From NCBI GenBank assembly GCA_964057225.1, contig OZ059895.1, forward strand, positions 15,500,001 to 15,564,000: a stretch of 64,000 nucleotides of DNA, written 5' to 3'. The position numbers were made by a program, and so were the translations under genes. This stretch comes from Auanema rhodensis. Lineage: Eukaryota > Animalia > Nematoda. The notes under the pieces were generated by a model, which saw only the letters and a program-made list of their open reading frames with translations, ran no database searches and was not told where the DNA came from. Each line of letters starts with the position of its first letter. Position 1 is the stretch's first letter. Of the stretch, positions 15 to 63,062 are shown piece by piece.

Positions 15-1657
15 GTTCAATGGTTTCCGTATGATTCACAGAACTGTAGCTTCATCATATCAAGTTGGACACATGATAAAGCCACAATCGATTATTGGCC
101 AATGTGGGAAGGCGTTAACCTAGCTAATATGGCTCGTAATGATGAATGGGAAGTTATAAGTTTCAACTTTCATCGCATCGAGGTTTGAAATTCCACAGAT
201 TGAGTGTTGTTATTGATTGTTGTGTTTAAGCAAAATTTCAAATGTTGCAAAGATCCATGGGTAATGTTATACGCACATATGGTTATACGTCGTAAACCAT
301 TATACTATATTATAAATTTGGTAATAATTTATATATTATATCATATAAATTAAAATAATTTTAGGTTATTCCGACATCTATCATTACTATTGTAGCTGTG
401 ACAGGTTTCTTTACACCAACATCATCTTCCAGTGAACGAGATGAAAAATTGTATGATTTTCTATCAATTTTCACTTTTTTTTTTAATTTTATTTTTAAAA
501 AAATAATTTTTAAAAACTTCAGATATCTTGGTATAAATACCTTGTTAACCATGTCTATTATGATGTTGATGGTATGTAATCAAATGCCATCAACTAGTAC
601 TTATGTTCCTTTAATGAGTAAGATCAAACTTTTCTTCGTCTTTTTCATATTTTCAAATAAATTATTCAGGTTGGTATTACATTGGAGTAATTCTTGTCAT
701 TGTTGTTGGTACTCTTATGGCTACCATTGTTTTAGGTGCGCTCTAATCACAAATCTATACATTCAAACTTTAACCTTTTCAGCTATTCATAACCAAAAAC
801 ATTATAATAAGCCTATTCCAACTTGGATACGACGTCTTATACATAATCGATATGTCAATTGTATGTTTTATCTTCATGTTGTAAGGATTTTGAAGTCATC
901 ATAGTCATTTTCAGCTATTATACTTGATGTGCCATCAGCTTTACTGGAGCTGTGGGAAGAATTTGGGGTTGTAGTGAGTGCACGTAACTCAACAATGGAT
1001 CAATTCCTATTGGATAGTTTAGATCCAGTATCTGTAAGTGAACTGAAAATGATCGAAATGATCAGTAAATCACATATTGCAGCAATTGCCACCCAGACCC
1101 AGAGCCTTCTTCGGCTCATTCTGCTCAGTATCCAGTGATACTACGTCTTTCGACTATACAGTCAGACTTGCAAATATTACCAAGCAGTACACATCACAGG
1201 TTCATAAATCTTTTTTTGTTTACATAATTAGCATAATCAATAAGTAGTAAGAATATAATTAGCATATACTCGAATCATTTTTAAGTTAAATGCATAGATG
1301 AGCGGTTGTATTCAGAGATTAATCTTTTTAATTATTATTATTATTATTAATATTTAATTATTTCAGGTACGTAGTAAAGACAAGGAACATAGGTGTCATC
1401 ATATGAGCAATTCATCACAAGCACGTAATGTGAAACGGCAAAAAATGCAAAGAAGGTTTGTTTTGTTGTTTATTACTCTAAAATCTTCATCAAATTGCAT
1501 TTTCAGATGCTCAATGGAATGGGAATTTTTAGCAAATGTATTGGATCGAATATTGTTAACAATGTTCTCAGGAATTACTTGTATATTATTCTTCTTACTT
1601 GTATTTTTTGATTATTTCACCCATTTATATCATCGTTTCAATAATATGATGTCATGA
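15..1657 (+). CDS. deg-3: Nicotinic acetylcholine receptor alpha subunit, DEG-3 group (5' part lies outside the window)
   Basis: Exons 15-182, 231-320, 365-450, 523-617, 670-735, 783-860, 915-1033, 1083-1199, 1367-1455, 1507-1657, all GT-AG. Spliced protein shows the Cys-loop end (WFPYDSQNC), loop B SWTHD, loop C FKCC, TM1 PLYYIINLVIPTSIITIVAVTGFF, TM2 EKLYLGINTLLTMSIMMLMVCNQMP and TM4 MEWEFLANVLDRILL. These closely match C. elegans DEG-3 as recalled. Confidence 0.93.
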
Positions 1658-2365
1658 TCATCTTTAAAATGCTTCTAGTCTCATTGTTTTTCCAACAACA
1701 ACAACAACAACAACATTCTCTTAATATTAGGTGTTAAGGTTATGAGCATGAAAAGCCATAACGATTCTGATCACAGACTGCGCACGAATTGTCATAGATT
1801 TTTATTAATTCATTCTTTCATCTTATACATATTGTTTAAACGGTTTAAAATCTTTTTTTTTTTTAATTTTAATTGCAATCACAGCCTACTGAGTCCATGT
1901 GTTCAGCCTGCCTCATTATTCCACCATCACTAAGCATACTCCCCAGAATACCAAAAGTGGAAAAGTTATATAAATAATTTATAATTAAAGTTACAATCAA
2001 TAAAATGTTTTATTTAATTTTTTTTGCTCGAATTTCACGAGAATAGCTGATGAGGAACAATTTGTCTCTTCAAATACAAAGATAAGCCAGTCCATATAAC
2101 ATGCTCATGTGATGAAAAGCATTCGATTTATCTAAAAACGTTTTCTGTGTGGAAAAAAAGATAAGAGCTCGAAGAGTCTTCAAATAAGCACTTCGTGTCG
2201 GTAATCACACCTTCACATTTTACCATAAATGCTATGCGTTTGGTTTACAACGTCCGTTCCTTCTATATTATTTGTACCCGAAACAACTCCACTTTGAAAG
2301 CTGCTGCACCGGTACGGTACAGGCATCCTAATTTTATTTTTCTATTTGATTCTCCCCCGAAGGGG

Positions 2366-2550
2366 ATGGGCCGTTCCCGCCAGCAGTGCAAGAGCGGGTC
2401 GACCCGTGAGATGGAGCTAGCAAGCCAGCATCTACCTCAGGTCTCAAAAATCGGTTAACCTTATTGTGATCCAATGGAACACATATCGAAGGTTAATTCG
2501 ATAAGAACGATTACTACACTTTGATCTTAGCCAAAAGGCCGAGAAGCGAT
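2366..2550 (-). ncRNA. U2: U2 spliceosomal snRNA (variant at nt 40-42)
   Basis: Minus strand reads ATCGCTTCTCGGCCTTTTGGCTAAGATCAAAGTGTAGTAATCGTTCTTATCG... It has stem IIa TATCGAA/TTCGATA with loop TTAACC and its IIc complement GGTTAA, Sm site GATTTTTG, and stem IV with a TTGCACT loop. A TCCCC-TTCG-GGGGA hairpin (2353-2366) follows. 3' end is approximate. Confidence 0.96.
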
Positions 2551-2890: not shown

Positions 2891-3259
2891 TTACGGCGTC
2901 TTTTAATACATTGAAGTTTAAAAAAAATATATAAATATATATAAATATAAGTAAATTAAATGATACTTGAACTGAAATTTATATATTTTTATATTTATAA
3001 TAATCTCCTAATTCACGCACATTTTCTTTGTTTTATTTGAAATTATTTTAAAATTTTAAAATAAAGCTGACCGCTATACGAGTTTTCTGTACAATCTGAA
3101 TATGAACACAACCGATCATATGAAAAATGCGAAATGAAATGAAAACGTGAAGATGGGCGCGAGTTACTTCTTTGTATCCCCACGTATGCTAATTTACGGA
3201 ATACGAATTGATTTTATTGATTTTTTTTGGAAATTTTTGAGACAGTTGGTATAATTCTT

Positions 3260-4729: not shown

Positions 4730-4771
<42 letters not shown>

Positions 4772-5720: not shown

Positions 5721-7552
5721 GAGAGTTTTTTTTTTAAGAATAAAGTGAAAAGTACAACAGATACATGAATAGAATATCTAGAAATGGATGAACTGCGTGT
5801 AGACAAGAAATTTGAAATTTGAGAATATGCTCATGATCTTCAATGCGATGCTACAACCCCACTCTTCCCCCGCAACATAAGTCACACAAGCGAGATATGA
5901 TACTTCATATCTCATTGTACTATTTATGAATTAAAAGCCATTATAAGGTATACCTTATTAGATATATACATCCAAATGTATACATTCAATATATATAATC
6001 AATACTGTTCCTGAGAATTTTTCATTTCAAATGTTTATGAAAGGCAAATAAGACTTTTCTATCCGCAGCCCACCCCCCCCCCTCCCTCCTTTGCTCTCCT
6101 CCTTCCTGGCCTACTTGAAGCTCAAGCTCTTGCCCCACCATCATCCTTTTCACTTATAAGTCTGTCCTACTACTAACTTGTATACATACGTTTATGTGTT
6201 CTATCTATCAACGTTGTACAACACAACCCATCAGTTGATGGATGTTATCGTTCTGATGTCGTTTGCAGACAAGAAGTACGGGGAAGAGAATGGAAGAGTA
6301 GTTGCGGGTAGGATAGATAGTGCTTAGTAGTCGTTAAGTTCAACTACAGTGTTACTTGCTGTCTGCAACACAAAAACATTAGAAATTTGAAAAAAAAACA
6401 AAGTACATTAGAAGTTTAATTGCCATAGATTTGTATGTCAAATCAATAACAAGATAAATGATTGTATAAAGAAGAAGAAGAAGAAGAAATCTATCTATGT
6501 GACCGTCTATAAGTGATGTTTCATTCCAGATGTGATGATGAATGATTTGGATAGAAGAAGGTGAAGCACGGGAAAGTGACAAACTTTTAGTTGAATTAAT
6601 GTTTTTTTTTATTTTTAAGAATAGAAAACTATTCAAATATCTCTAGATTATATGAAAAATAAAATTTTTCTGTGTTTTTTGATGTTTTAAATTATAAGAA
6701 ATATTTATTGATACTCCATTCATATGGTATAGATTACAGAGATTATTGATTGAAAATGAAATTATTTAGTTTTTATACTAATAATATTCAAAAAATTTAT
6801 TTTATTTATTAATAAAAAGCAATATTTGAATATTTATATTTTACAAAAATATCACTTTTTTGCAGTTTGACGATGATGACCGTAGTCTATTGGATGATAC
6901 TACATCAAAGTACGGTAGTTGACAACTCATGTGGTTGTTGGTGGTCGTTATTGTTGATACTTATGGATGTGAAATGTAAGGGGTGTAGACATCTGGTGGT
7001 CGTGGACTCATCTGGCAACAATAACGATGACGATGAAGATGGAGAAGATGGAGGAGATGGAGAAGATGGAGAAGCTCTCAGAAAAAGAAAAGTTTTCGAT
7101 TCGTCGACACGAGAATATCAGTCAATTTCCAAGATGCTCAATACGATGCACAGACGATTCTAATTCAGCTATTTGAACTGTGAATGTGTGCGAATTGCTG
7201 TAGCTGCTACTACAACGGCAGCAGCTACAGCAAGACAGCTCACATCGTTGTCGGCATCTGATTCTGATATGTCATCAACTATCAACTGACGTCCTCATTT
7301 CTTTTCTCGATTCAACACTTGAGTTCAATTTTCATTCGTTGAGAATGTGTCTTGTGCTATATCCTCTTGTCCTCTTTTTCTACCGTATCATCGCAGTTTT
7401 GTTGGAATTTTCCCAAGTTGTGAAATGCTTTAAAGAAGTTTTAACAATTCTCCACGATGTTAAATAATAATTTTCAAAGTTCTATAGTTAGAGACATTTA
7501 TAATCTACAAATATCTTGCAATTATAATTCTTTATAATTATTTTTAAGAGAA

Positions 7553-8932
7553 ATGAAGAAATTTTCAATTGAATATTTATTATCAAATGCTGCTGGATCA
7601 TCAAAATCAAATAACATATCATCATTGTCATCATTATCATCATCATCAACATCGTCGTCGTCGTCTTCCTCTTCTTCTTCCTCTTCTGTTTCTTCGACAT
7701 CATCAGCAGTTGCAATCGAAAATATACAAGTTGCCTTGGAAGGGCATCTGTTATGGCGCAAGTTTCATATGCTGGGAACTGAGATGATTGTAACGAAAAG
7801 TGGAAGGTATGTCATCCATTAAATATTTCAATCATATCTATGATTTTCATCATTAAAGATAAATAATAATAATAATAATAATAATAATATGGATTTACTA
7901 TATCATATCATCAGATAATAGAAAAAAGTAAAAACGAATTGAAGAACATAACTTATTGAAATTAATTAAACTCTTTGTAATATTATAATATTAAAATTAT
8001 ATTGATTAGTTTTTAATTAGTACAAATTTCGAATTTCAAAAGTAGACCTTTAAACGTTTACGTGAGTTTAAACGTGAGTGGATTTACACGTGAACATACA
8101 CGTGAACATACACGTGAATGTACACGTAAACGTGAGCTTACTTCTCTCATTTTGAGTTTAACTGATGCATTAAGCGGTTGTATTATTTATAATTTCATAT
8201 AATAATCATAATTTATTCATTTTACAGGCGCATGTTTCCAACATTAGCAGTTTCTATATCAGGCTTAGATCCTAATGGCTCCTATTCGCTAATGGTTGAT
8301 CTAGAATCATTAGATAGTAAACGATATCGATATTCATTTCATCAGAGTAAATGGACAGCAACAGGACCAGGTTAGAGCATTCAAGCTGCTGCTGATCTTC
8401 AGTGGTTTTCATACATTCGTTCTTTTCTTTGTTTTTGTTTAGGTGAAGTAGAGTTGCCTTGTCGCACATTTGTCCATCCTGACAGCCCAGCTAGTGGAGC
8501 TCATTGGATGAAAGGAGTGACATCATTTGATAAAATCAAATTAACCAATAATCAAATGGATAATAATGGCTATGTAAATAATAATTTATATGTGTATAAT
8601 CATATAATATGTGTATAATTTATAGATTATTGTAAATTCTATGCATCGTTATCGTCCACGCATTCATATTGTTCGTCACGACACCATGCTACAACGAAAA
8701 ACTTTTTTTTTCGAAGAAACTTCCTTTATAGCCGTTACAGCATATCAGAATCATCGAGTAATGCTAATATAACTTCTATAAACATCTATGTCATTTCCAG
8801 ATAACATCGCTCAAAATAGAATCAAATCCATTTGCTAAAGGATTTCGGGAATGTGAATTGGATGAAGCACGTCTACTACCTTTTCTACTTCCATTCTATA
8901 ATTTAGCTTTTCCCATCAAAAAGGCTTCATAG
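7553..8932 (+). CDS. mls-1: T-box transcription factor MLS-1 (Tbx1-like) with N-terminal eh1-like motif and poly-Ser tract
   Basis: Exons 7553-7806, 8228-8370, 8443-8573, 8626-8757, 8801-8932. T-box reads [23 protein letters not shown]...RYSFHQSKW...[12 protein letters not shown]...[28 protein letters not shown], matching C. elegans MLS-1 as recalled. N-terminus [10 protein letters not shown]. Confidence 0.9.
8052..8136 (+). repeat. ACGT/CACGTG box array (12-bp unit CACGTGAACATA) in mls-1 intron 1
   Basis: acacgtgaacatacacgtgaacatacacgtgaatgtacacgtaaacgtgag, preceded by three further ACGT cores. It lies directly 5' of a TCATTTT-N21-CGGTTGT element. Confidence 0.85.
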
Positions 8933-10915
8933 ACTTCGTATAATGATCATTCTCTTAACTATACATATAATATGAGAATCAGTCCTTTTATTCAAAATGC
9001 ATTTCCATGAATTATTTCCATTTCAAAACACATAATATACGCATATTTGGAAATTCTCATTCATTAACGTGAACATAAAGTAAGAAGTCTGTGTGCCTTT
9101 TCTCGTCAGCTAGTCATCAACTAATCATGTATTTTCACACAAATTTGAACTATTTCTCAATGATGTCATCAGTCATTATAACGAAGCAAAAACTGTCTAC
9201 TTTTCCATTATCAATGATCGATAAAGTATCATCATAAAAGATGTCTTCTAGTCACAACAAATGACATTCATTTTAAGATATTGACAAGATAAATTGATGG
9301 AGTAGCTTCTCTATGTCTTAGTCTCAAATCTTCCCGTTTTCCCCTCTTCTTTCACTCTCTCTCTCTCTCTCTCTTTTCTTTTTTTTTTCTTACGAATTTA
9401 CGTACACCAATCTGATTTTTTTTTTTGACTTTTCAACGAAAATAAAATAACAAAATGCCATCAAATGCCATAATATGAATGATTACATCGGTCATTTCAT
9501 ATGTTATATATAGTAAAAAGTATCTGTGAGAATGTATATTGGTTGAATAAATCTTCAGGATGGAAAATAATAGTTTCAGGACCATTTTTACTTTTAAGCT
9601 CAGAGTTTTTGCCACGACAAACTTGGATATAAAACTTAACTTTCACGTATTCTATGACATATTCGACAAACATTAATTGTAGATTTCTAAATGTAGTATG
9701 TTTTAAGCTTTCTTAAATGAATTTTTTAAATGCTTTGGTGGTCTTTTTGCTTGTCGGTCCCCAAATGACGAGTTTGCCAGGATGGATGAATGATGATTCC
9801 AGCTGCTGCTTTTCATTCAAGTCACTGAAGTCTGAAGTCTATAATGATAGAAAACGAAACGAAAAGAATGACCTTAAACATGTGAAATTAAAGAGAAATA
9901 GATTGTAAGATGAGCTGGAAAATCATAGAGAGATTATGAGTATGAAGAGATACAAGCTGGCAGAGATGAGCAGAGACAGCTTGTAATGTGTGTGCTTTTC
10001 CTTCGTCTGTGAGCCTGATAACTTCCATCCATCATATTCATCGAGCTCAACTATCTTCTAATAGTTAGCTGAAGGCTTCACTCGCAAACGTTATCAACAT
10101 TGACAACCATTGCAACAGCTTTTTAAAAAAATATTTTTCTTCCACTGTTTGTGCTTAGATTTGGTCACATTTTTGGAGAATTATGCTTTGGCAAAGTTAG
10201 ATCATTTCGGGTAATTTCGTTGATTTTCATCAGTTTTTGTCTTACAATTTCACTTTTTAGGTTTTATAGTCTCTTGAACCCTTTATAGTTCTGTAGGAAC
10301 TCTCATAACTATGAGCATATTTCCTGTTTATGCAAATGAACAAAGTAATTCATCATCTAGCTTGTCAGTTGAAGAGCATGTTGCCTAATCTGATGACCGT
10401 TTCGGCAACTAATCGGTTGCCTTTGAAGTAAAATCTGTGCCCAGCTGGAATAAAGGATACAGACATGACTATACCAAAGCGATAGCTTTCACAAGTCATT
10501 TCGCAGCTTTTGCACACTACCACCCCCTGTGGTTTTCAGCTCCTGATGGCGTCAACTTTGAGTTTGACTGTCTAATCCGTCTTCAATCAGTCTAATCTCT
10601 AAGGCATATGCACGTGTGAGCATGAAGTGCAGTCCTTTTCCAAGTAATGGAGAGAGGCCTAGATAAGACATAAGAGCTAATAGACCTGTGACGAGGCCAT
10701 ACAAACGAGCGAGGAACACGAAGACGATGATCAGTTGCAAAGGATTCTCATTCTGTCAGGTGATCCGTCTTCTGTTCTACTGTCCTTCATGCCGGCAACC
10801 CTTTTGTCTCCGGTATTCTTTTTTTGATAAAAAAACAACAAAACGAACAAGAACCCAGTATACACATAGCCTACTTTCTCGTTTTCTCAAATTCCAGAAA
10901 AGATAAATGTCGATT

Positions 10916-10921
<6 letters not shown>

Positions 10922-10978
<57 letters not shown>
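10922..10978. repeat. (AG)~28 microsatellite
   Basis: Perfect AG run. Similar shorter runs at ~4733-4768, 13237-13258, 14907-14942, 16216-16277, 17110-17132, 18072-18093 and 63746-63767. Confidence 0.95.
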
Positions 10979-10982
<4 letters not shown>

Positions 10983-13900
10983 TATACATTACCTGTATTG
11001 AGTCAACAAACAATGTCAACGCTTCTTTTACGTAATGTCAACAAAGGTTACGAGATTTTTGAGATCATAACCGTTTTTTAGCTTTTTTCTTGCGGAAACA
11101 AAGAGAATGAAAACATGCTGATTACTTAACCTAAACACACATATCCATCTTTCAAAACATAAGTTATATCATTCAGCAGTTGGTTCATATGCTTTCACTT
11201 GTTCCGAACATCGAGCGGTTGTCCTCGTTATGTTAGTAACAGTTGTTTTTTCTTTATAAGCCATCATCCAATAAGCTTCATTGAGAATCATAGAAATTGT
11301 TTGAGAATAAAGAAGAAATAACCCTTAATAGAGATGTCATCATCGTTCTTTCTTTCATGTAGAAACAGTTTTTTTTTATTTCTTTCACATATATCTGATA
11401 GTTATAATACCGCTCTCATTATCCAGCCTATAATTAAGTCAATTTTGTCATCAACTTGACCGCTAGCCGATCCCGACCTTTTGAGCACTTCAATAGCCTT
11501 ATTATAGATTATTATTATTATTTTGAAGTCTGACAGCTGACCAGAGCATGCCGGATATTCTCATTTAATGAAATTATTGTGTTTTTTCTTCCCAAAATTC
11601 AGAAGCAGCAGAAACAAACAAAAAAAAATTATTTGAAAAGAAAATTTCAGCTTTCAAATCATGTATGTATCCAATAAATATTATTTTATATTTATGGATT
11701 TATGGAAAACAAACAAAACAACAACAAATTTAAGAAATTCAAAAGAAACATAGACAGACACATGAACATCTGCTTTTTCTAATTTTCTCGAGAAACTTGG
11801 TGCATTCGTGAGAAAGATTCAGCAGTTTGAACTTTAAAAATCAGGCAATCATAACAGTTGCACGTGCAGCATACGTGAACACAACGTGTTATTCATTTCG
11901 TTTGATGTGCGCATGAAGAGCGGTCGGGTTTATGATGCACAGAACAAGCTGTGTTGCACTCAAACTGGTAAGGACTAAGCAACTAAGCTGCAAGTTGAAT
12001 GGAAAACACACATAAATAATTCTTTTCAAATATTTTATAAAGAGCATAGTTTAGTAAATGATAGCATAGTTAAGCATTTCATGTGGTTATGGAACGGCTA
12101 TTTGTATAAATACATCGTAAACATCTAATTTATAATTTATATTCAATTAGTTCCCCCCTTAAATCATTTTGTGATTCATCTCTGGCGAGAAGGTGTGATA
12201 ATGCGGGATAGTAAGGCGCATCCATCCTGATAGTGACGTCGGCAAGACTCTGTTGATCAGAAGAAGATGATGATGTTGATTAACTCCCTTTTTCTCTCTT
12301 AGTTTTTGTCTTTATTCCCTTTCTTTTACTTCATTACTACACAATACTGTCAACCTCATCTCAGTAGATCAAAGAACTGCCGACTTAGTGTATATGCCAA
12401 ACCAGCTGCCTATCTACTGTGTCGTTCTCATTCGCATTCTCTCTCTCTCTCTTTCTCTTTTTGCTGTCTTTCTCTTCTCCCTCTCTCATACACATTGTTT
12501 CTCTATCTCTCGCTATCTTTGGGGGTCTGAGCAGTCTTTGCAACTGTCAAACCAGACGAGACTTTGATAGAAACGAGAGAACAGGACAATGGAAATGATG
12601 ATGTCGGGATGAGGACATCAAAGAGATTATTCTAATAGACTAGAGAGGTGATAACTATAATTGAATATGTTTTACTCATGTTCAATATACTATATGATAT
12701 GTCCATAGATTATGCTATGAAGCTTTAACAATCTTGAATACATATGAGCTTCTTATAGAATATACAATATCCACCAAGATATAGACCACAAACCGATATA
12801 TCTTGATATCAGCCATTGAAACCCCTTGTTTTCTCTTTCTCTCTTTCTCTAAGTATATACATAATCAGCATAGTTACATCGTCATCTGTGAAATGGTATG
12901 GTGTTTGATGAACAATAGGCAACTGGTAACTGTTTGAAGATTTTTCGTTAAAACAAAGATCCCCCCTTTTCTCTCTCTCTCGATTTAGTGGTAATAGACA
13001 AATTGAAGATATTATAAGCTTATCCATAAAGTTTGTTAACAACCTTTGACCATGTTCTGACCGGTAATGTTTACTTAGGTAGCATTATCCGTATATTGTT
13101 CCGAAAAGTCGGATCATGAATGATCCTTTTATCTTTCTTCAAACATAAACTTATTATATTACACAGAGCATGATCATATAATTAGTATATCAGTATACAG
13201 GAAAACATGAATCAAAGGAAAGCAGCAAGAGAGATTGAGAGAGAGAGAGAGAGAGAGATGAGCTACTTCTTCTACCTCATCATCATCATCATCATCTTTG
13301 TCTTTGTCTTCTTTCAATTCACACAGACGAATACCGTACTTTCATCGATATACATACATGCCGTCGTCGTGATGATTGTTAGAACAGAAAATCGGACAAT
13401 ATCTGTAAGATATACGTATAGTAAAGGAATGATTTTCATTTGAGATAATGATGTGGAGAGACGGCTATCGTTTTACGTTTCATCGGTCAGGCACACCATG
13501 CCAATAGCAGAAAGTCAACGATTAACTTACAATAAAAGTTTTTTTATACTAATTATATGATATAGTTATTAATTATTATTACAATAGAAACTATGTTTAA
13601 TCTTGTAATACATCTTCTTCGACTTCTCTTCTTTTCCTTTTTTTTTTGTCGAAAAAAAAAGAAGAAAAGATGGATGATTGAGCAATATCATTACTTATAT
13701 AAATTATAATAAAAGTATATACATATAGTAAACATATATTCTAAGATATTTCTTTGAAATAGCATAGTTAAGTCCTATTTCAGTATATTCAAACGTATAC
13801 AACATTGAAAAATACCGTATCCTGTTGGGTTCTCTGGCTTTAAACCTGATGGAGTATTGTGTGTATGTGGTAGTCAATGTGCCAGCTCTTTTCAGTATAT

Positions 13901-14902: not shown

Positions 14903-14946
<44 letters not shown>

Positions 14947-19205: not shown

Positions 19206-19339
19206 TTTCATAGGATCTTCCTTGACGTATAATACCATTTATAGATGGTTATAAGCAATACAAATCTATGAATTCGTATAAACGAATCAAAGATGGCAAA
19301 AAAGACGGTAATGAGCTAAAAAAAACTCAGTTTCCGTCT

Positions 19340-19505
19340 TGAGTTATCAGCTGCCGGTTGCCGGGACCAATAAATCACGACTGTTTGACAGGAGGGAAGA
19401 TGGAAGACCGAACGTGGGCGCTGGACCGATGAGGGCGGCGCTACTTAGGTCGGTGGGCGTGGTCAACCAATAGACAGCGAGCAGGCGTGGCTTCAACTGG
19501 CAACC
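19340..19505 (-). promoter_or_regulatory. GC-rich proximal promoter of ceh-13
   Basis: Abrupt GC-rich island 135-300 bp upstream of the ATG. It contains two CCAAT boxes, two GGCGTGG (Sp/KLF) boxes, a TGACAG (Meis-type) site and CCAATAAATCA (TGATTTATTGG on the minus strand). Confidence 0.6.
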
Positions 19506-24300: not shown

Positions 24301-27300
24301 CATCTTCACAAACAGTATTTTTCTCATGTTAACTCCTTTTGATCATAGACATACTGTCGGCATAACTAAAGAATACGGTATTCTACACAAGTTCGTGTGC
24401 CAGATTAGGAATCTCTCCCGAGGTTACAGCACAATCTGGACGTCGTCGGCTGCTGAGCTCACATCTGGTCATGACCATTTGACCATTCGACCAGTTTGAT
24501 GGACGTCGGTATAATCCGGAAAGCAGGGGGCATTGTATTCGGAATTTTCAGAAATTTTTAATACAAGTTGTATGCTTATTTGTTAGATAATGGAAAGATG
24601 TTAAAGATAAGAGAGATCAAAGGGTATATGTAAAGCGACTTCATGAAATTAAAAAAAATTTCAGAATATTAAACTTATTTACATAAAATAATTAAAGAAT
24701 TGCATTCTTTTTTTTTTTATTAAATTAGCTAATTAAATATAAGTATCTTATCAAATATTCAAATTAAAATTGTGAGAAAACGTGCTATTTTTATAATTTC
24801 AAAGTGGCGGGTAAAATTAGCATAAGTACTGTAGCTACTATTTTTATTTTTTTATTTCCGTATTTTAGGCATCAGCAGACGGTTGTATATATCTATGCTG
24901 TATTTTCTACCTACCGTTATTAGTATTTCTTTTCAGAATTCGTATCAAGAATCATAGTTTTATCGATTAAACGGAGTATTTTTGTTTTACTATTTTCGCA
25001 CCGATAATTTTGTCAAAGCTTTCCGTGAGGTTTTTTCTAATATTGTTATTTACAACTTTGTTTTCTTAAAGTTTTACAACAAGAAAAAATGAATTTCGTA
25101 ATTCCTCCATGATACGTAGGTAAGTAATATAAAATCTTTTATCTGATTATTTTTATTTATTTGCTATAGGAAATTGAGTAGCAATTATTACTACATTTGT
25201 TTTACTTTAAACAAGCAAAACAAGACATAGTGTTTAAGCACACAGATCGGGCTCCAAGGAGGAAGCATCACCAGTTTCTACCGAGGTGACAGAGGTCGAA
25301 CAGACAGTGATGGATCATATCCTTTCGGTCGTCCCGACGTCGTCACAGAAGTTGTGTAACATTGAGACACGACCCGTCCACTCTTCTGAAGCTAAACGAA
25401 GATGAACGAGAGCCAGACGGCCGAACTAGAACATTAGGATATTCTGCTATCTATCTCTACTCATATCAGTATATTCAATGAAAGCTGTCCTCATTCAGCT
25501 TAACAACTGGAATCAATGTTCGATGAGATGGATTAGAAGGATAAGCAGAGATGTATCAGGGACAACATTACTCATATTTAATAATACAAACATACATTAT
25601 TTAAGTAATGTTTCTTAATTTTCTATAATACTTATGTTTTTAGATTATTTGAGGTTAAAGTTCATTCATTATAAATTTTTACGTTTTATCCACTTATTTC
25701 TGACTTATTCAGTAATTCCAAAACTCCCTCTATCAGGATTTGCGGAATGCTCAGCAATGATCATATGATTCGTGGAAAGTTCGTGTTGACCGCGATCCTG
25801 TGTTGATAGATGTCTTCTTTCGGCTGCTCACTATCGGCCAAGCTCCGAGATTTATGGCTATCGATGGTGCGTTTACAACCTATCTTTACTCTTTCTTTAG
25901 TTGCCATGCCATTCGCAACATTACTACCCTGCCTGTTTTATTTTCCAAGTTCTTGCCGAATTATTTATATAATGTTATTCAGGCAAACTCTTTTTGCTGT
26001 TTTAGAAACCTAAGAGCATTTTAAGTTTTCTAGTTCTTTAAGCATTTCCTGGTCTTTTAATGGATTTATTATAAAACTAAGTTTTAATATGCTCTAAGCT
26101 TCTTTTCATCTTTTCACATGTGCGCATAATTATTCGGCAGTTTTTTTATTTTGTTTTCTGAAGTTGATCAACTTTTCGTGGTTTAGTTTTGTTTGAGCGA
26201 ACGAAAATAATAGTTGACTATACGGTAAAAGCATATTACTGGATGAAGAGAACAAGAGGATCAGTTGTGAATCTGGAAAGATAACAACTGTTCGTTTGTC
26301 GCTTTCTGCCTCTATCTTTTGGTCCAAACATCTTTTCAACATATCAATATTTGGATTACGGTAGATTGTTCTGAACACTTTTCGTTTCATAGCTTAGAAC
26401 AAGAAAAAGGGATTCATTCTAACTTCTAGATTATTCTTTATCAGTTGCCTTGTGTTATTATAACCTTATTGCTTGTTTTGACTCTCATCTATGTAGGGCA
26501 CTATTCTATTTTCTCAAGATGTAGCTCAAAACTTTGAACTGTTTCTAAAAATACTTGAATGCTACACCTTGCTATGTATTTTTACTAAGTTTTTCTAAAT
26601 TAGTGATCTATTATCGGGTTATATATGGACTGTACTGATCAGTGTTCCACTAATTTTATTGCTTGCTGTTTATCTTATTCAATAGAAATAGAAAGGATAT
26701 GAAATACACTCTCTTCATAGCAATATATTTCTCGGGAATGAATGAAAGGAACAAAGAGAGGTTTCAAATCATTTTTCATCAAATTTTTCTCTCTGATTCT
26801 CATGGTTATTGATTACTTTTATCGTTTTGATAGGCGTTTTTGGTGTTTCCTACTGTTGTGATCAAGCAAGCATCTTCATCTCTCTTCAGCCAATGTAATC
26901 AATATGTGGTATCAATACAATGCAACCTAAGAAATATGTATAAACCTTTGGGTCGTGGATGCCAGCAGAAGCCATAAACCATGAGCATTACCATTCAATC
27001 TATTCTTTTTTCCACGTACTCCCCTATTTGTATAGAATTTCTCACTTTTCATATTTGTCTGCATCTCTTATCTCTCCATCTACTATATAAATATAGTTTT
27101 ATATGTTTTTGATGCCATGTGAATCGGACCTTTTTATGTTCATTACGTGTACCGTCATCAAAATGGGTTTGTTAACTCGTTCACTCACTCAATCATTTAT
27201 AATTATCCTTATTTGACCTTTTGAAGATAATCTTATTCTTGCATTTCTTAATTTATTTAATTTTTCACTAAAACATTTTCATATCGTTTTGTATGGTTGG

Positions 27301-29077: not shown

Positions 29078-31494
29078 GAAGATACAAATTTTCCCATTTT
29101 TTGTTTAAAATTCTTATTTTTTTCTCAGTGTAAAACGTTCGAAAAGGTATAATCTTATCATTCACCTTTCGACTACTAAGTGGAATGTAGAAAATAGATA
29201 AGCTTGGTCTACATGCTTCCGATATCCGAATTTTTTTCAATATTTTGATAAAAACCAGGTCAAATGATATCACTCACTCTTCTTTATGTGTTAAATTCAG
29301 GTAAGTTGGCTGTTCAAATTTAGATCAAGTTTGTTCCTATTTCCTTTTCATTTTTGCAAAATCGAAACATTTTTGCCCTGAGCTCAGCAGCTTCTCTTTG
29401 ATCATTTATCTTTCCAGTTTTCTTCATATTATGAACTCAAAGAATACATCAGCCGTCTTACTAAATGGATTAATCGCCAACGGAATAGCCCAGTCGGCCT
29501 GGGGAAAAAAGAAGTGTTGGGGTTAGATGAGTAGAATGTTGCGGATGCCGAGCGTATGTCTGATTTATGACTGTACATTATCGAGTAGCCGAATCTTCCT
29601 TCTTTTTCTCATTGCCATCCTCTCTGTTTAGCCTTTATCTATCACCCTGTTTCTCTTTCCAGACCTCTCATACTCTCACACGCCGACCGCTGGGCTGTGT
29701 CGTCGTAAAACTCATCTCCTCTTTCCTTTGTCAGCAAGTCGCATTGCTGGCCAACACACAACAAACCAATCATCTATCTTCGGCACAATACTTATTCTTT
29801 TCGGAGAAGTAACCTGCTGTTGATAAATTATAACTATTCAAGAGAAATTTTCGTGTGTGTATGATACATGTCCCTCTCTACATAAGACTGTATTAAGGAA
29901 ATTTGGCATCTTCTGGCATCTTGCAAACTAGAATTTGAAAAAGGTCTAAACGTGTCAGAAAGACATACGGAGGCTTGTTATATTCTTCTGATGACAATTG
30001 AATCTTATTTGACCTAAAGAGTTAGAATGCCATTACTTTTCAATATCATTTGTGATTCAAATACTACCATATGAGTCAGTTTGCAACCCATTTTGGACTC
30101 TTTTGTTTCACAATTTCTATTCTGTTGTCGTTGGAAAAAAGTAATGGAAACAAAGAAGAACTTAAAAAGTTTTTGGTTAAAAGAAAGACAAAAATGAATA
30201 GAAAGAAGAAGTAAGATGGTCAGCACATGTGAAAATGAAATGGGAAGACGGTAAATAGCCTGACAGATTTATGCTGGAACTGTAAATTCGTTAATCTCAT
30301 AGAATTGTCATAATATTGTGAAGTTTATCGACAATCTAATGCCGAATAGTATTCATGTTTATTAGTATTATAAACAAGGTATAGAAGATACAAAACACTA
30401 TGATATATGTATTAAATGAAAACAGATTCATCGTCAAAACATCCAATATGGAGGGAATATATACTTACATATCGATGATAAGCACTAACATTCAATGTTC
30501 AATATAAGAGTGACATAAGATATACATGTTAAAATATTTAAAATATTGTTAAAACACTTGATTTATAAATAAAATTCAAATTATTCTCACGTACTTTTCA
30601 CGTAGAAATTTGAAAAGAGATGAAAAATCATTTTATGCTAAAGAGTTGTGAACCGGTTGTTTGAATTGTGATGATCCAATTCAATGTTTCAATAATAAAT
30701 TTCAACGTCGTTTCAATATTTTACCTATGATTTCCAGCTTTTCATTTATTTTTATTAATAAAATAAATTAACAAACTATATTTCAAGCATTATATTTGCA
30801 AGATATGCAAATAATTAATTTATATATCTAACCTCTTATTAATTATTTTTAACTGCCTGCAACACAAGTTATAAAGTATTGAGTTTTAATCATGGAACAG
30901 CTAACTATTAATTTTATCGTTTTTTTTTCAAACTGCAACTAAGAGAATCCTACATTGATTTCGCGAAATGAAAAGTTTGGTGAGAAATTTCAAACATGAT
31001 GTTGATCCGTGAATAGAGAAAGACCTAACATCTTAACCTTTTTGCTTCGCAGTAAATGAGGATTTCCGAACATTCGAGATTGGGGAAAAAGTTTTTTTTA
31101 CCAGATACTGTAACGAAACTGCAGTCATGTTATCTCTTTGTGATGTCAGGCATAGTGTTCGTTTATATATAGCTATCTTCTCACGTTATGTAATTTTGGG
31201 GGAAAAAAGTAGAAGTGTTAATGATGATTCTCGAGATACAAGTCTTTCAAGCGTAAACTATATCTCATTTGGTTCATTACTTCTGCATACAACTCGTGAA
31301 TCAAGCTTCATCATTTCTATTGTATGATGATAATAAGAATAGTTCAATAAAAATATGAATAGTAAACTCACAACATTATGTCAAGAGTATGAAATTGTTA
31401 TTGTATAATATCCTTAAACGTTCAATTTTTAAAAAAAAGTTTTATTTAAGGATTACGGTATGCAAATGTACGTATAACGTTGAAATTAGGGGAT

Positions 31495-37836: not shown

Positions 37837-40800
37837 CATGCTTAACTTTATAGCTTTAAATTCAAATCAATATCCTTGAACACATATGGGAGCAATCATC
37901 TGTTATCTGACGTGCTATTCTTCTGAAAAAATCATTTTCATCAAGATTGTTCTCCCTAATTATCGAAAATATTTTTAGAAGCTGTTTAATCTCTAAACTC
38001 TTTATAAACTCGGCTTTGTAACGCTTTATTCTTGACAATACAGCCTCTTAGATAAGCGAGAAAGTCGGTCCCTCCTCGTTCCCCTTCTCTCTTTCTCGTC
38101 TCTGTTCTCCCTCTTTTGAGCCATCATCGTCTTCATTCTCCTCTCTCCACCCTTGTCCGTCTACTCTTTTTCTCTATCGTCTGCCAGTGCCTGCCTCGAC
38201 TCCTGGAATTCAAAATTGAGCCATTTGCTTGTTTTTCTCACTTTTCCATTGCTATTTCTTTGCCGGAACACCTTATACGGATAGAAAAGTAGAGTATTGA
38301 GAACATTTGAATACAGCCTTATGATAGTATGGGTAATGTGTGATTTCAATATTCACTGCAATATCTTTAACTGCGCTTCACATCGTAGAAACAACCATCT
38401 GATACTATGTTTGTTCCATATTTGTCACTAGTTGGATAATCATTCTTTCCTCATCTTGCTCATTTAAGAATCAACTGATCATATATCTCAACAACTCAAC
38501 TAGGAATTAGATAAAACTGAGCTTGAAGATGATGAAATAGATTAACAGAAGGCTGCATGAGCAACTGAACAGTTAACGATTGGTAGCATCGAATACAGAT
38601 CAGAAAGATAGAGAATAGAGAATCATGCGATACGCCAAATTATTAAAAGAAGCTAACTTCGGCTAAGACGATGTAGGGATATGCCAATCGAATTATCCTA
38701 TTGATTCTGGCCAGCTACTGCGGAATGCTTTTGGCGCGAAAAATTAAGTTTGTAACCTGATGCTGCTGCCGTCATCAAAAGCCTAAGCTCAGTTCTCGCT
38801 CTTTTCTCTTTATCATGCTAACTCTTCTCTTACTCTTTTTGCTTTCATCTTCTCATTCCTTTTAGTGTATCTCTATATTTCCTGGTTAGGCTTTCTGTTT
38901 CTCTTCGTCTTTCTGAATGTTATAATCCCTGTAGATCTCCTTTGAACGGATTGTAGCTTTCATTGTATATTCTCTATTGTGCTTATGCTTTTCTATGTCT
39001 TTATTTGATTGCTATCAAGAAAAAGGAACTCTCGTCGCTTTATTATTCACTTGATAACCAAACGATTGTATGCCGAACTTTTCGTGGAACAACGTTTTTT
39101 TATTCATTTCATTGTGATAATCTTCTTTTTATAACTTTTAATTGGAAATCTTCAAAAAAAGGAAGTAAATAACCGTGAGTTTGCTTTCAAGCTCCATATC
39201 GCTATGCTTTTCTGATGGGAAAATCGCAAATGTTCGATTAGGGTTTGGAATAGACTACTACTGTTTTAGTTTCTCTTTCACATCAATGTCCTCTCTTTTT
39301 TGTTACCCCTTTCTCTCGTTTTCTTTAAAAGCTTCCCACTTATTTCATCCATTGAAAGAAATTCCTTTTTGAACTGATTCAGTTTCATTTTACGCTATAA
39401 AAGTTTCAAATGAATCGAAGAAAAATGTTGAAAGCTCGCTCGAATTCCAAAATTTGCTGGTCTATTTTTATTATTTAGATCACTATTTCTTAGAATTTTT
39501 TCTTTTTAATACTTTGCTACAGTTTAGTTATTGATTTTCTATTTGCATCTCCACGTGAAATTTGACGTAAGACGCACATTTCCATTTTTCAGTAAGTGGA
39601 ACGTGCATAACGGTTATTTTGGTCATTTTCTATCTTTCTTTCCCTTCATCTCTCTATCTTCGTTCTTTTTTTTATTTCTTCAGTTTTATTCCCCCTCTGC
39701 TTTCCTTGAAGCGTTTATCTCATTTGCCTCTATTTTTCCGGTTCATTCTTTTTTTGGCTCTCGTCCTTTTCCTGCATGACGGACGACGGCTACATTTCGT
39801 GTGGGCTTCTCCTTTTTCCTATCTACCCAGCAGTGATCCTCGTTTTCTTTCCTACTCTTGCCTATAGAATCTAAAAAGAACTGCTTCTGCGCTCGACAGC
39901 TGAATACATTAAAAAAAAAAAAGAAAAAAAAAACTGGTGGAGAAAGAGCAATCTAGTGATATTAGTAGAGTAGACGAAAAAGGATGAGAGAAAAAAATGA
40001 ACGCTCATCTGCTCTATTTCAACTTGTTCACTGCTCTAAAGGCTGTGGTTGAATGGTGATGTAATTTGTCACACTCATACGTTTTTTTCTGTTATTCATC
40101 GGCTGCTAATAATGTGATAAGTTCATTATCAAGATTATTGTCTTCCGGCTCATATCCATCTCATGATGTGGAGTAGCTTTCATGCCTATACGGTTTACTA
40201 TTGGTATGCTAGGATGATTGAAGAAATACGAGTAAATGGGTTAATTAATGTGTTGTCTATTCTAACTATCTCATTTGCATATAACGCACATGACATGAAC
40301 ACCGAGAGGCCCCAAAGACAACGATCTGTCTGTCCTCTGTCCCTCGAATAGAATAGAATAGAAATACAGATATAGATAGATATAGACGAAGTAACACGGA
40401 TTCAAGTTAACTAAGAAGAGGCCGAGAACACCCGAGAGATAGGAGGATCGAAAGATGCCCAATGCCGGGCACAAGGTCATCTAACTGTCTTTCGTTCTGC
40501 GTTGTCGTTTCCATCGTGTCCACCTCTGTTCTCCTGTTAGCCGTTCGCTTGACGACTAAAATATATAGAGAGAGGAAATTGTGGAAAGAAGGATCGACGG
40601 ATTATTCAGGGTCTCATTCTCTTCATCCTATCGCTCTCCACTCTTTGGCCGGCTACTGAATAGCTGGTCTCTTTTCTTTTCCTGCAAGTGTCTCCTTCCT
40701 TTTCTTCCAATATACATCAACTTGTCGGTTTCTCCTCATTCGCAACCTTCCCTTACTTCAATCTGTTCCTCGCTCTTTTCCTCTCTTCCAATCTACCTTC

Positions 40801-53956: not shown

Positions 53957-53965
53957 GTTAAAACT

Positions 53966-54823: not shown

Positions 54824-56536
54824 TTACCAGTCTAATTTCTGAGATATATTTGTATCTATGATGTGGTAATCTGTATAAATAAGTTGTTTAAAGTTAGGAT
54901 TGAGCTGACTCCACTCATCGAAAACACGTCTGAAAACATTGAAATTATACACAGAAAACAAAAGAACATAATGAAAAACATACTTGAACTCCAGTTGCAT
55001 CTCGTCTTGTAAGCTCCCATAGATCTCTTCAACTTTTTTCAGAAGCGACTCACGCTCAGCTGTTGTTTCTGCTCTAACTTGCCCGCCTCCATTTGCACAA
55101 CCTGAAGAACACAAAGTGCTTACTACAGTTATTCCAACAAAAACATACCATTGGGACATGCCATAACTTCTATGAAATCATACGTGCATTTCCCTGATTT
55201 CATTTTTCGCACAACGTTTTGAATATTTCGAAAACCATAACATTGGGCAATTCGGAATGTTCTATGCTCAGAAACTATTTCAATAACATCCAAGTTTTTC
55301 GCTCTAAAATAAATGTTGAATAGTTTCAAAAAATGAGCTTTAATCATACACTCGGGATGAATTTACAGTGCCGCCATGCAGCGACAATAAGCTTTGGGCT
55401 ATCAGTTCAGCATATCCGCCTGATGTACCGCCCGTTCCTCCAATCACGTGACCTAAAATAGCAATGTTGTATTGACTCAAAATCAGAATAACAACCTAAA
55501 GAAAAGGCTGAAAGCCAGCCTTCGTGAGACATATTTACTGGTTCATAAGTAGCCGGTAATGCACTTTCCAATTCAGCTGAAATCAGAAACGCATGAGAAG
55601 TAACGAATAAGTTTCATCAACCTGTGCTAAGAACACAGTCCGTTTCACGAAGACTTGTTCCGGGAACATAAAAGTCGGTACGAGAAGCTTCTAATTTCTT
55701 GTCGAAACAAGGCATAACACTTAAGTGATATACGTGCTCAGAATTCAAATTAAGACGTCGCGCAAGAAAATCTTTTACTAATGCTCCTTGTATAGCTTGC
55801 GGAGAGCTGCAAAATGGCCAAACAATTGGTGATGAATAGCAATTACTTACCGAACTTTACTAATTAGAGGTGTCAGTAATGGTCCATGAGTTTTCTCAGC
55901 GTAACATACAAATCCTGGGCAAGCTGAAGACAACATAGGTCGAATAGAAGATGATAGAAATTCTTCTTTCTGCGCTTCTAATGAGAATATTCGACCAAAT
56001 GATGAATCAAGTACATATTTAAATCCTAAATTCAAAATTAATTTGAAAATTTGTGCCTAATTTACCCAAATTCAAAAAATATGTTGATATAAGCTTTGCT
56101 GCTTCACTTGGATGTAATTGTCGTTTAGCAGCAATCGAACATACTGTTTGAGGGCTGATGGTTGCAACGCAAAACTGGAAATTCTTAACAGCTTCAAGCA
56201 CTCTAAATTATGTTCAAAATTATGAAAATATTGTGATCAGCTAATAGAAAACCTTGCCAATGATTGTTCCTCCACAAGCACAGTTTCAGCACTTGTGATA
56301 CATCCATTACAGGCTAAACAGTCATTTAAAGATATTTTAACAACATTCTATAAAACTTATAAAACAATTAATCAATTATTATACATGAATATACCTTTTT
56401 CTCTTTCGGTTTATCAATTGTAGCATCTTTAATACGAATACCAACTAATGGTTCCTCTGTTGGAGCTGCCGTTTTAGTTGTTTCAAGAGGGATTATACAA
56501 TTCTATAATTTTCAAATATAAGGAAAAAGATCAGAG

Positions 56537-56575
<39 letters not shown>

Positions 56576-60776: not shown

Positions 60777-61351
60777 TTGTCATATCTTCTTTATTAATGT
60801 ATTCTCAAACCAGAAATAGTCCGTTGAAGAGTTTTTTCTATATTGTATATAAGGTCTAAGTTTATTTCTTGCCATATTCTACAGATAAGACCTTTTTCAC
60901 TTTGCAAGGGTTGTGCTACTCTGTGATATAAGATTTATGAAAAACACTAAGCAATTTGACAGCGGTGGCAATAGTATTGTTTGTAAATTTCCCCGGATTT
61001 GTACATTTTTACTGTTTCCTTCATGATCATAAGCCTACAAGGTAGGCAGACATTTTCTTTAACATTGGAAGACGCTAGTATGTAATACGCTTTCACGAAC
61101 TGGTCCGACTCAATATATCACGCGATATCTTGTTTCACGAGTTCTTTTCTTTCTTTTTTTTTATTTTTTTAAATCCTGTTTGAATAGAAATGCCGTATTA
61201 GCATATTTTTATTGAGATAATGTATAAATTTTAGATTCGACGAAAGAATTTCCTATGACGAAATATAATAATTATGGGAATAATCACATAATAACTTATA
61301 TGATTTTTTTTTGATATTTTTTAAAAGTAAAATTTAAATATTCTTATATTG

Positions 61352-63062
61352 TCATCTTCTTTGTATTCCAAATTGTTCTTCGGCTTTAAGCTTAATCTCA
61401 TTATAGAAACACCTTTTGATGTTCTCGAAGCGATCATAGCATGGGACGTATGAATAATCTAACTTAGTCAATCTGAAATTAAGTTACTAACTTGATAGCA
61501 TAGTCATTCTGTATACTTGTCTGGTCGTTGATCACAGAATGTCAGACACTTTTGCCCAGCTAATGTAGTTGTAACTCCGTTTCGTATACAACACTGCAAG
61601 ATTTAACCTAATTACTTCCGATTTTTCAAAATTGTTGATACCTGTGTATGATCTCTTCCTTGAGCAGCACAGAATTGCATATCAGCGGCAGCTTCTAATG
61701 GACACCCATCAGTTTTGAAATACATTGATTGAAGCTTAAATATTTGAATGAAAGACATGTCATGCAAGGATTTTCGCATTTATGATGCTTGTGATTAGTT
61801 ATGTGAGCTGACGTGCAAAATCATCATTTTGATATTTTTGCCGTGTTGACCGGTTGTGCAACAACAAAAAGTTCAAAATCTTCATGCAGTCCAAGTAAGT
61901 CAGAACGTCTATTTTCGTTTTTGTTTATTTTATTTTGCATTTTGATTTCTCTATGATGGGTTTCCGTTATTTAACTCTTCGTTCTTGTGGGTTGATATAA
62001 TAATAGCCCGAGGCTGCGTAGGTGAGGTAATAGGCGTTGTGTCCAAACTGGACCGGAATGACATAACTTGTGACACTCGGAATTGTTAAAAAAGAAAAAT
62101 ATCTAGTTAGTTAGCTATGAAAGTGAATGTTCCATTAACAGAAAAAAACTTACAGCATCTTTCGTATAGGCGTTGAAATGGCATTTGTTCAAGCAAGCAT
62201 CCGGTAAGCCCCTTTGTTCGCAGCATTGCCGGAAGATGAAATTAGGATTCTGCAAGAGTGACAAGACTGAATATTTTATTCGAAATTTCGATTATTTGCG
62301 TCATCGCTTTTGTATATAAACAGAGAAATGAATAGAAAAATAATGATCAACTTACTGTCATCATAGACAAAGTATGATTGTCAACTTGTGGCCATGGAGC
62401 GTGTTCATCCTCTTCTTCCTCTTCCTGTTCAAATGGATTCTCTTCTTTTCCAGATGAAGCTCCTCGTCTCATGCCAAATATATTGGTCAATGAGCCAGCT
62501 TTAACTTGTGCTTTAGGTTTTTCCTCTTCCTCACCCTCAGATTCAGGTCTAGCAATTGTTGTTATATCCGAAATGAAGATGCCATCCTGAAATTCCATCA
62601 AAGTATTCTGGATTTGAACGGATCTACTGCTTTAAGTTTGTACATAGCATATAGCATGATTCTTGCCAAACACACAGAAAACCACGGAAACTAGTAATTA
62701 TGATTAAACAAGTTTTCGGGATTTTACCGATTTGTTGCTATTGTCCTTGACAACTGGGCAACTATTTCTTTTTTAAAATTTAAAAAATAAGTAAAGAGAA
62801 GTTTTATCCACTTACCACTTTCTGGGTTAATGCTGAACGGGCTCTGTTTCTTGCACAGCCATACTGACCACATGAGTAGCCTGGTTGGCATGTTTGCGGG
62901 TGACATGCTACAGGGGGTGGAGCTGAACAGTAGCCACCACCACCACCGCAAACTCCAGAAGTAGCACACTGTGTGAAATGTGTAATTTTGAAAAAATTCT
63001 GAATTGAAACTTACACTGTAAGCTAAAGGAATTAGAGCAAGAAGAGTAATGTAGCTCAGCAT
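61352..63062 (-). CDS. Secreted DB-module (Cys-rich) protein
   Basis: Signal peptide MLSYITLLALIPLAYS, a Gly/Cys-rich segment and an acidic linker. Then NPNFIFRQCCEQRGLPDACLNKCHFNAYTKDALQSMYFKTDGCPLEAAADMQFCAAQGRDHTQCCIRNGV...KCLTFCDQRP...YVPCYDRFENIKRCF, the Cys pattern of the nematode DB module. Confidence 0.85.

Follow-up and report, generated by a model that had tools for sequence, protein, structure and literature searches.

The 64-kb window analyzed here, a stretch of the genome of the nematode Auanema rhodensis (C3:15.50-15.56 Mb), harbors a nicotinic-receptor-like gene, a solitary gene for U2 small nuclear RNA (snRNA), a T-box gene and a homeobox gene, and carries several dispersed copies of a two-box element of the form TCATTTY-N(19-21)-CGGTTGT, which is the subject of this report. 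The pattern is matched exactly five times, compared with no match in 100 dinucleotide-preserving shuffles, and CGGTTGT heptamers occur seven times (2.7 expected), the partner box missing solely at position 11216. With up to two mismatches allowed, a spacer of 21 nucleotides (k = 21, where k is the number of nucleotides between the boxes) retrieves six copies against 0.92 expected and adds those at 11893, 24852 and 19327, whereas the control spacing of k = 25 stays at chance level (two matches vs. 1.25 expected). An earlier note on this DNA had listed the copies with correct coordinates throughout, had assigned a partner box to six of the seven heptamers and had described the copies as non-coding and of fixed spacing, all of which holds. 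Its weak member at 19327 is probably a chance match, because the underlying variant TCAGTTY is not enriched genome-wide at k = 21 (two matches vs. one in the control).

In the 181-Mb assembly of A. rhodensis, to which all genome-wide counts refer, TCATTTY and CGGTTGT are paired 880 times at spacings of k = 5-35, compared with 42 pairs for the reversed control. The spacing of k = 21 accounts for 495 pairs (one in the control) and k = 20 for 81 (one in the control; about 17 of the 81 are repeat copies), while k = 22, searched without the leading T, yields 103 matches (five in the control), and the remaining 28 spacings together contribute about 200. A scan for a spacing peak over k = 5-40 had been proposed as a check on the element, and the scan over k = 5-35 indeed reveals one sharp mode at k = 21, with an approximately 5-6-fold drop one base off and 77% of the pairs at k = 20-22. 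The heptamer itself is not over-represented (5,431 occurrences vs. 7,060 for the reversed word). All copies listed at unique loci lie at about 4.9-18.5 Mb of contigs C1 and C3 to C7, the contig ends carrying repeat-family copies only, and the window represents a hot spot with its five copies, as the genome mean is about 0.3 per 64 kb. Among variants of the downstream box, TCATTTY-N21-CGGWCGT occurs 38 times (none in the control), about 23 of these being one repeat family and nearly all others reading CGGTCGT; the box set of the worm is CGGTYGT, a small subset of the fly consensus for the downstream promoter element (DPE). Relaxing the downstream box to GGTT at +28 (counted from the A of TCATTTY as +1) gives 1,479 matches compared with 157, a number inflated by a 226-bp tandem repeat, and the non-repeat entries mostly read CGGTT. 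This tandem repeat, present in at least 88 copies at C1:6.375-6.395 Mb, fits TCATTTC-N22-GGTT by chance of its own sequence. A divergent pair of copies 15 bp apart (k = 16 on the minus and k = 21 on the plus strand) is found at C1:9985320-9985398 and forms a bidirectional-looking arrangement.

Some copies do belong to repeats, as would be expected if the element were a relic of a mobile element or of some other repeat family: about 17 copies with k = 20 are family members at C1:3.37-3.47 Mb and C3:18.51-18.54 Mb, and so are the approximately 23 CGGTCGT copies at C3:3.99-4.14 Mb, C1:19.55-19.81 Mb and C5:20.56 Mb. However, nine copies with 120-bp flanks align at a mean column identity of 39% and without any shared flank, and neither the flanks nor the spacers of 50 unique loci can be aligned, the boxes and a few fixed positions being all they have in common. 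This lack of alignment argues against a repeat family, in agreement with the previous judgment that no recent family is involved, and we regard such an origin as exceedingly unlikely. The arm repeats that carry the element have conserved spacers and include a type with k = 20 and CGGTTGT (C3:18.51-18.54 Mb, 3,688-bp period) and a type with k = 21 and CGGTCGT (C3:3.99-4.14 Mb, where the copies form inverted pairs separated by about 261 bp). These families possibly represent mobile elements, or else genes in multiple copies, that contain an internal promoter of the Initiator-DPE type.

If the A of TCATTTY is taken as +1, the spacer of 21 nucleotides places a C at +27 and GGTTGT at +28 to +33. 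The DPE of Drosophila reads RGWYV(T) at +28 to +33 from A(+1), needs an Initiator (Inr) and tolerates no change in spacing (PMC5580651), and the precisely positioned promoter words of flies include TCAGTY (INR), TCATTCG (INR1) and, for the DPE, CGGACGT and KCGGTTSK (PMC1779564). TCATTTY agrees with the fly Inr TCAKTY in its K = T variant only and has TCATT in common with INR1; GGTTGT fits RGWYVT at the exact DPE position when the spacer is 21 nucleotides long, CGGTTGT is a literal instance of KCGGTTSK, and the single genome-wide mode at k = 21 corresponds to the strict Inr-DPE spacing. Position tables were compiled from 30 and then 52 independent sites, in which ascertainment fixes the letters searched for but leaves the other positions free. 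Among the latter, +24 is a purine in 47 of the 52 sites (G in 28, A in 19), +25 is an A in 37, which substantiates the A already noticed two bases before CGG, and +26 is an A in 22; in addition, -3 is a T in 35 sites and +35 a pyrimidine in 47, and the table is flat outside -3 to +35. A preference of flies for G at +24 was reportedly noticed by Kutach and Kadonaga in 2000. The resulting G/A-A-A-C-G-G at +24 to +29 matches SAACGS, the 3' half of the consensus CSARCSSAACGS of the motif ten element (MTE; PMC8867553), and positions +24 to +26, which lie outside the search pattern, therefore also fit the fly downstream region. Altogether, about 13 specified positions agree with Inr, MTE and DPE in precisely the register of flies, which makes coincidence very unlikely. 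As to a TATA box, the position table shows no A/T-box signal at -33 to -25, and neither TATAAA nor TATATA occurs in -50 to -1.

The claim of an undescribed element has to be divided accordingly: it is not a described nematode motif, and an Inr+DPE module has not previously been described in this lineage, whereas the kind itself is already known from the Inr+DPE promoters of Drosophila. The footprint-like appearance of a multi-subunit DNA-binding complex, as seen in the earlier note, seems to have been judged rightly. A Myb-type site had been suggested solely from the fit of CAACCG to the loose consensus YAACNG and is not supported, the CGGTTGT box being accounted for by the Inr-DPE geometry; equally unsupported are roles of the element in chromosome architecture, replication, centromeres or telomere addition.

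The upstream ACGT boxes, another feature noticed before, are borne out by a count of 51 in -50 to -1 over the 52 sites, compared with about 2-3 per 25-bp bin elsewhere, and at least one such box is present in this interval at 33 of the 52 sites. Most of these boxes read (C)ACGTGAA and a minority ACGTCA, and their positions range from -7 to -52, so that they behave like proximal factor sites rather than like a fixed core element. Some of the arrays exhibit a helical-type period of 11-12 bp, such as the three boxes at the 11893 copy with their period of 11 bp, and the array in front of the 8147 copy (Table 1) looks, from its sequence, like a homotypic array of factor sites.

Taking these features together, we propose with moderate confidence that the element is a TATA-less, TFIID-type Inr+DPE initiation module for RNA polymerase II (Pol II) which is driven by nearby ACGTG-binding activators. 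TCA(+1)TTTY would represent the Inr, and R(+24)-A-N-C-G-G-T-Y-G-T(+33) the downstream promoter region, consisting of the 3' half of the MTE and the DPE. TFIID of flies reads the Inr via TAF1/TAF2 and the DPE via TAF6/TAF9, and the rigid spacing in the worm may be explained by TFIID reading both elements together, as it does in flies. An activator of the bHLH or bZIP type, bound to one or more (C)ACGTG(AA) boxes in the 50 bp upstream, would switch the module on, and transcription would start at A(+1) and run toward the T-rich side. The many copies away from gene 5' ends, in introns or in gene-poor DNA close to genes of neuronal or developmental function, would then probably serve as internal or distal promoters or as starts of the transcribed-enhancer type, pointing the same way as the host gene or the downstream gene.

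TAF6 is encoded in the genome, as judged from an exon-by-exon profile search (PF07571, E=1.8e-23). Matches to its C-terminal domain form two adjacent sets within 3 kb on the minus strand (C6:13820270-13823240), possibly representing tandem paralogues. The same exon-by-exon procedure, for which TAF6 served as a positive control, returned no candidates genome-wide for NELF-B (PF06209) or NELF-C/D (PF04858), a result that does not amount to proof of absence; to our knowledge, NELF is absent from Caenorhabditis elegans as well. In flies, stable Pol II pausing depends mainly on the G at Inr +2, whereas a T is equally good for initiation in vitro (PMC6483594). The absence of the Inr-G variant together with that of detectable NELF suggests a DPE-type promoter that would not rely on stable pausing of the fly type.

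The flanks of the copies are asymmetric. The skew of T over A rises from 0.00 upstream (-150 to -3) to 0.105 downstream (+33 to +183; p=5e-4 in a paired Wilcoxon test) before fading by about +300, and splice-acceptor-like motifs number 3 in sense and 12 in antisense orientation within 200 bp upstream, compared with 24 sense and 10 antisense within 300 bp downstream (Fisher p=0.0016); with a stricter definition of the acceptor, no antisense acceptor-like site is present from -15 to +130. Since a T-rich sense strand is typical of nematode outrons and introns, an asymmetry that begins at the element is indirectly indicative of a transcription start. Open frames of at least 70 amino acids are more frequent in sense than in antisense orientation (176 vs. 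128, p=0.007), equally so upstream and downstream of the copies. Pfam searches on the flanking frames yielded informative matches for 4 of 20 sense and 1 of 20 antisense cases, which is suggestive only; as the individual sense cases were picked on sense frames, the sense lean is mainly derived from the unbiased cases in the window, the skew and the counts of long frames. A possible reason for this lean may be that antisense promoters inside genes would generate double-stranded RNA and would be selected against under strong RNA interference.

Table 1. Copies of the two-box element and further features of the window. Positions refer to the first nucleotide of the window; promoter positions are counted from the putative +1.
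Feature	Position	Strand	Remarks
Exact copy, k = 21	1275..1309	+	putative +1 at 1277; G at +24 followed by A at +25; upstream 100 bp free of ACGT boxes
Exact copy, k = 21	3108..3142	-	putative +1 at 3140; ACGT boxes at -45 and -8
Exact copy, k = 21	8147..8181	+	putative +1 at 8149; sense, inside T-box gene intron 7805-8225
Near copy TCATTTC-N21-CGGTCGG, 2 mismatches	11893..11927	+	G at +24, A at +25; ACGT at -33, -22 and -11
Near copy TTATTTC-N21-CGGTTGT, 1 mismatch	24852..24886	+	surroundings without recognizable coding exons
Copy, k = 19	30628..30660	+	ACGT boxes at -41 and -30; gene-poor surroundings
Copy, k = 20	61824..61857	+	one ACGT box, at -15; may be antisense to a gene on the minus strand, whose sole support is a weak Cbl_N2 match at 54827-55159
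Weak copy CCATTTT-N22-CGGTTAT	39582..39617	+	ACGT boxes at -31 and -19; membership uncertain
Weak copy TCAGTTT-N21-CGGTTGC	19327..19361	+	no ACGT boxes; neighboring homeobox gene on opposite strand; probably chance
Eight ACGT boxes (ACACGTGAAC-type)	8054..8133	+	-95 to -19 of the 8147 copy, four at exact 12-bp period; putative activator sites
Neur_chan_memb match	398-901		nicotinic-receptor-like gene
U2 snRNA gene	2361-2550	-	solitary copy with the best score
T-box gene exons	7543-7617, 7696-7804, 8226-8368, 8441-8573, 8626-8757, 8801-9334	+	from spliced RNA contigs
Homeodomain exon	15828-16340	-	E=3e-12

The genes around the copies were read exon by exon, with domain searches on single exons rather than on joined proteins. 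The copy at 1275 lies in sense orientation in the last intron of the nicotinic-receptor-like gene, with the acceptor of the M4 exon about 55 bp downstream, at about 1361; frames for the Cys-loop, M1-M3 and pre-M4/M4 were read around it in addition to the domain match in Table 1, and the motif in the last of these frames is what we take to be M4. The minus-strand copy at 3108 is located about 120 bp 3' of a minus-strand open reading frame with a weak match to the C-terminus of DEG/ENaC channels and precedes the U2 gene, which has the same orientation, by 590 bp. RNA data were available from four small runs of one study, which cover parts of 7001-13000. Spliced contigs from all four with GT..AG introns define a plus-strand gene whose translated exons carry a T-box domain, and the copy at 8147 resides in the 421-bp intron that interrupts this domain and whose acceptor, used at 8226, follows the copy after 45 bp; around the 11893 copy, these runs contain no RNA in 10400-13000. 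No minus-strand copy with up to two mismatches lies upstream of the homeobox gene at 15828-16340. Elsewhere in the genome, one copy (L083) is found in an intron of about 210 bp that separates the S4 exon of a voltage-gated K+ channel gene from the exons for S5 and the pore, with the acceptor at +93, and another (L084) in an intron of a 3-hydroxyacyl-CoA dehydrogenase gene, with the exon for the Rossmann motif at -406 to -308 and the next exon near +190. At a further locus (L016), an exon of the CCDC85 family starts with ATG at +90, directly after an acceptor, a layout that resembles a short outron followed by a trans-splice site and could, as far as its sequence tells, be either a true promoter or another intronic case. 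The L072 copy is followed at a distance of about 520 bp by the start of a RhoGEF domain, and at one site of the antisense control (L065) a gene with a Piwi domain lies downstream on the opposite strand.

The sense orientation of the resolved intronic copies, often 45-60 nucleotides before a 3' splice site, and a mild overrepresentation of sense acceptors at +45 to +95 (8 vs. about 4 expected) would also suit an element acting at the RNA level, namely a bipartite protein-binding or splicing-regulatory site on the sense strand of pre-mRNAs. However, the rigid spacing fits the geometry of double-stranded DNA better than that of flexible RNA, the ACGTG partner boxes have palindromic cores and sometimes a helical period, 35 of the 52 sites lack any acceptor within 250 nucleotides, and copies also occur in SL1 arrays and gene-poor DNA; moreover, the sense cases had been chosen on sense frames, and the antisense control yielded one case, next to the Piwi-domain gene. 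A function in pre-mRNA is therefore considered very unlikely. A fixed distance to the 3' splice site was likewise rejected as a general rule, as the excess at +45 to +95 is only mild.

The linkage to genes for small structural RNAs bears on the idea of a component of snRNA-type promoters, such as the proximal sequence element (PSE) bound by SNAPc or a distal element, which the earlier note had also entertained. Arrays of SL1 genes at C3:14.47-14.84 Mb consist of units of 340-490 bp, with full-length Rfam SL1 matches of 51-57 bits that carry GGTTTAATTACCCAAGTTTGAG, and each repeat unit examined contains a copy or a decayed copy of the element, either 71-72 nucleotides past the 3' end of SL1 or, in the long units, as a variant about 212 nucleotides before the next SL1 gene; the copy at 3108 is likewise upstream of U2 on the same strand. 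On the other hand, the 150 bp directly upstream of this U2 gene lack both boxes, and a copy within 1.5 kb is found at none of the 29 other U2 loci, most of which belong to one tandem array on C1. The boxes of the SL1 arrays, some of which are decayed, are no better conserved than the rest of the units (73% throughout), so the link to SL1 is real without settling the function, and one ancestral copy may have been amplified together with the array. Furthermore, the probable true PSE of SL1 is a strongly conserved block at about -70 to -40 whose sequence differs from that of the element. An snRNA-type promoter component thus appears extremely improbable. The U2 array itself occupies C1:10.96-11.28 Mb with a period of about 2.46 kb. 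In the window, an Rfam scan detected only U2 and no RNA family at or after the copies.

Initiation at +1 might also serve another product, if the copies were promoters of short capped RNAs at which Pol II stops after a few tens of nucleotides, where the GC-rich box gives way to the T-rich tract, yielding precursors like those of Piwi-interacting RNAs (piRNAs) or other small RNAs from intronic loci of the Pristionchus type. The copies are indeed intronic and dispersed and show YRNT at the start (C-A-T-T), and a GC content of about 0.39 at +16 to +23, followed by the CGGTTGT box and by about 0.27 beyond +44 with a T-rich tract, resembles the pausing signature of nematode piRNA loci, in which a region of high melting temperature precedes one of low melting temperature (PMC6436959). 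Against a piRNA-like promoter, which had been suggested before, stands the background level of the Ruby core GTTTC in -60 to -20 (3 and 0 per 20-nucleotide bin vs. a mean of 1.56); in addition, with about one copy per 10 kb or less the element is much sparser than piRNA loci, all products would have their first bases dictated by TTTY at +2 to +5, and the copies lean toward sense whereas P-type piRNA loci are equally sense and antisense (PMC6436959). We consider promoters of short capped RNAs to be quite unlikely.

Several observations weigh against the proposed initiation module. About 9% of the CGGTTGT heptamers in the genome are in the k = 21 arrangement (in the window, five of seven at k = 19-21), the Inr-G variant TCAGTTY-N21-CGGTTGT is essentially absent genome-wide (2 vs. 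495 for TCATTTY), and the fly DPE word CGGACGT occurs just once at the k = 21 spacing. Long frames are not enriched downstream relative to upstream of the copies, and the frames from the first three ATGs downstream are no longer than at random positions, which indicates that most copies are not directly followed by a coding first exon; this test is of low power, since first exons are short and outrons can be long. At the 8147 copy, the contigs neither begin at 8149 nor cover 8149-8225, and 8226 shows no loose end with a spliced leader; the depth, however, is only 2-4x, and contigs by their nature cannot show starts. Starts at the sense intronic copies in the genes for the T-box protein, the nicotinic receptor, the K+ channel and the hydroxyacyl-CoA dehydrogenase would give truncated and probably useless proteins. 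Finally, the boxes are far narrower than the fly consensus and could also fit one sequence-specific protein instead of TFIID. Such a factor or complex, for instance a long multi-zinc-finger protein of the REST or CTCF kind that recognizes two half-sites a fixed distance apart, would act in regulation or chromosome architecture in the vicinity of neuronal and developmental genes and would not start transcription. It would suit the restriction to TCATTTY and CGGTYGT, the location of copies in introns of ion-channel and transcription-factor genes, the hot spot in the window, and the lack of RNA starts in the four low-depth runs of contigs, with the limit on contigs just given. Yet its site would have to mimic about 13 positions of the fly Inr, MTE and DPE by chance, including +24 to +26, and a strand asymmetry setting in at +1 is expected of transcription, not of a passive binding site. 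We therefore regard a factor other than TFIID as unlikely.

If the element is indeed an Inr+DPE module, its copies may constitute a lineage-specific class of intragenic mini-promoters in sense orientation, switched on by an ACGTG-binding factor. Their role would be either to supply Pol II to the downstream portion of long genes of neuronal or developmental function, the next 3' splice site serving for trans-splicing, or to produce short capped RNAs. Such a module would keep the downstream contact of fly TFIID but lack the pausing machinery (Inr-G and NELF). We put this forward tentatively, as a possible but rather doubtful extension. The presence of hundreds to thousands of letter-perfect Inr-DPE modules would imply that the downstream contact of TFIID is old in molting animals and was lost or blurred in Caenorhabditis, and would open a sequence-only route to start sites in a trans-splicing animal, whose mRNA 5' ends are erased. 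It would also provide a natural test of DPE promoters with a non-G initiator only and without pausing of the NELF type, and the intronic sense copies raise a testable question on internal promoters and transcribed enhancers in nematode genes.

Of the known systems, the Inr+DPE(+MTE) promoters of Drosophila share with the worm element the TCA(+1) with T at +2 to +4, the box at +28 to +33, the G at +24 and SAAC at +24 to +27, as well as the strict single-mode spacing, the lack of TATA and the association with developmental and neuronal genes (T-box gene, homeobox neighborhood, ion channels). The worm words are narrower, however, and leave the commonest fly initiator TCAGTY and the DPE word CGGACGT essentially unused; in addition, the worm element has an ACGTG partner within 50 bp upstream, many of its copies are intronic and sense rather than at annotated gene starts, NELF is not detected, and the module is defined by its sequence. 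A sharply defined DPE is well established in flies, whose non-LTR (long terminal repeat) retrotransposons jockey, Doc and I have internal Inr+DPE promoters. The arm repeat families with the same module could be elements of this sort, whereas the window copies are unique sequence and not transposon ends. In humans, a sharp DPE is rare or elusive (PMC5580651). Piwi-interacting RNA loci of the Ruby type, as in Pristionchus (PMC6436959), resemble the copies as dispersed intronic Pol II units with a YR start and a transition from GC-rich to AT-rich sequence near +30, but the worm copies lack the GTTTC Ruby motif, are far sparser, have fixed bases at +2 to +5 and possess a downstream heptamer of their own. 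For C. elegans, DPE and MTE were described as "not enriched" (PMC3730108), and a motif survey scored 0.1% DPE (PMC8867553). Thousands of initiation sites with an Inr and without TATA or Sp1 motifs have nevertheless been found away from gene starts in this species (Chen et al., 2013, PMC3730107), and elongation from its transcribed enhancers proceeds toward the downstream gene in 90% of cases (PMC3730107). These enhancers, for which no DPE or MTE has been reported, are defined by RNA and chromatin data, whereas the copies in A. rhodensis are recognized by their letters; with starts off the 5' ends of genes that run in the same direction as the downstream gene, they represent the closest precedent for intragenic copies in sense orientation.

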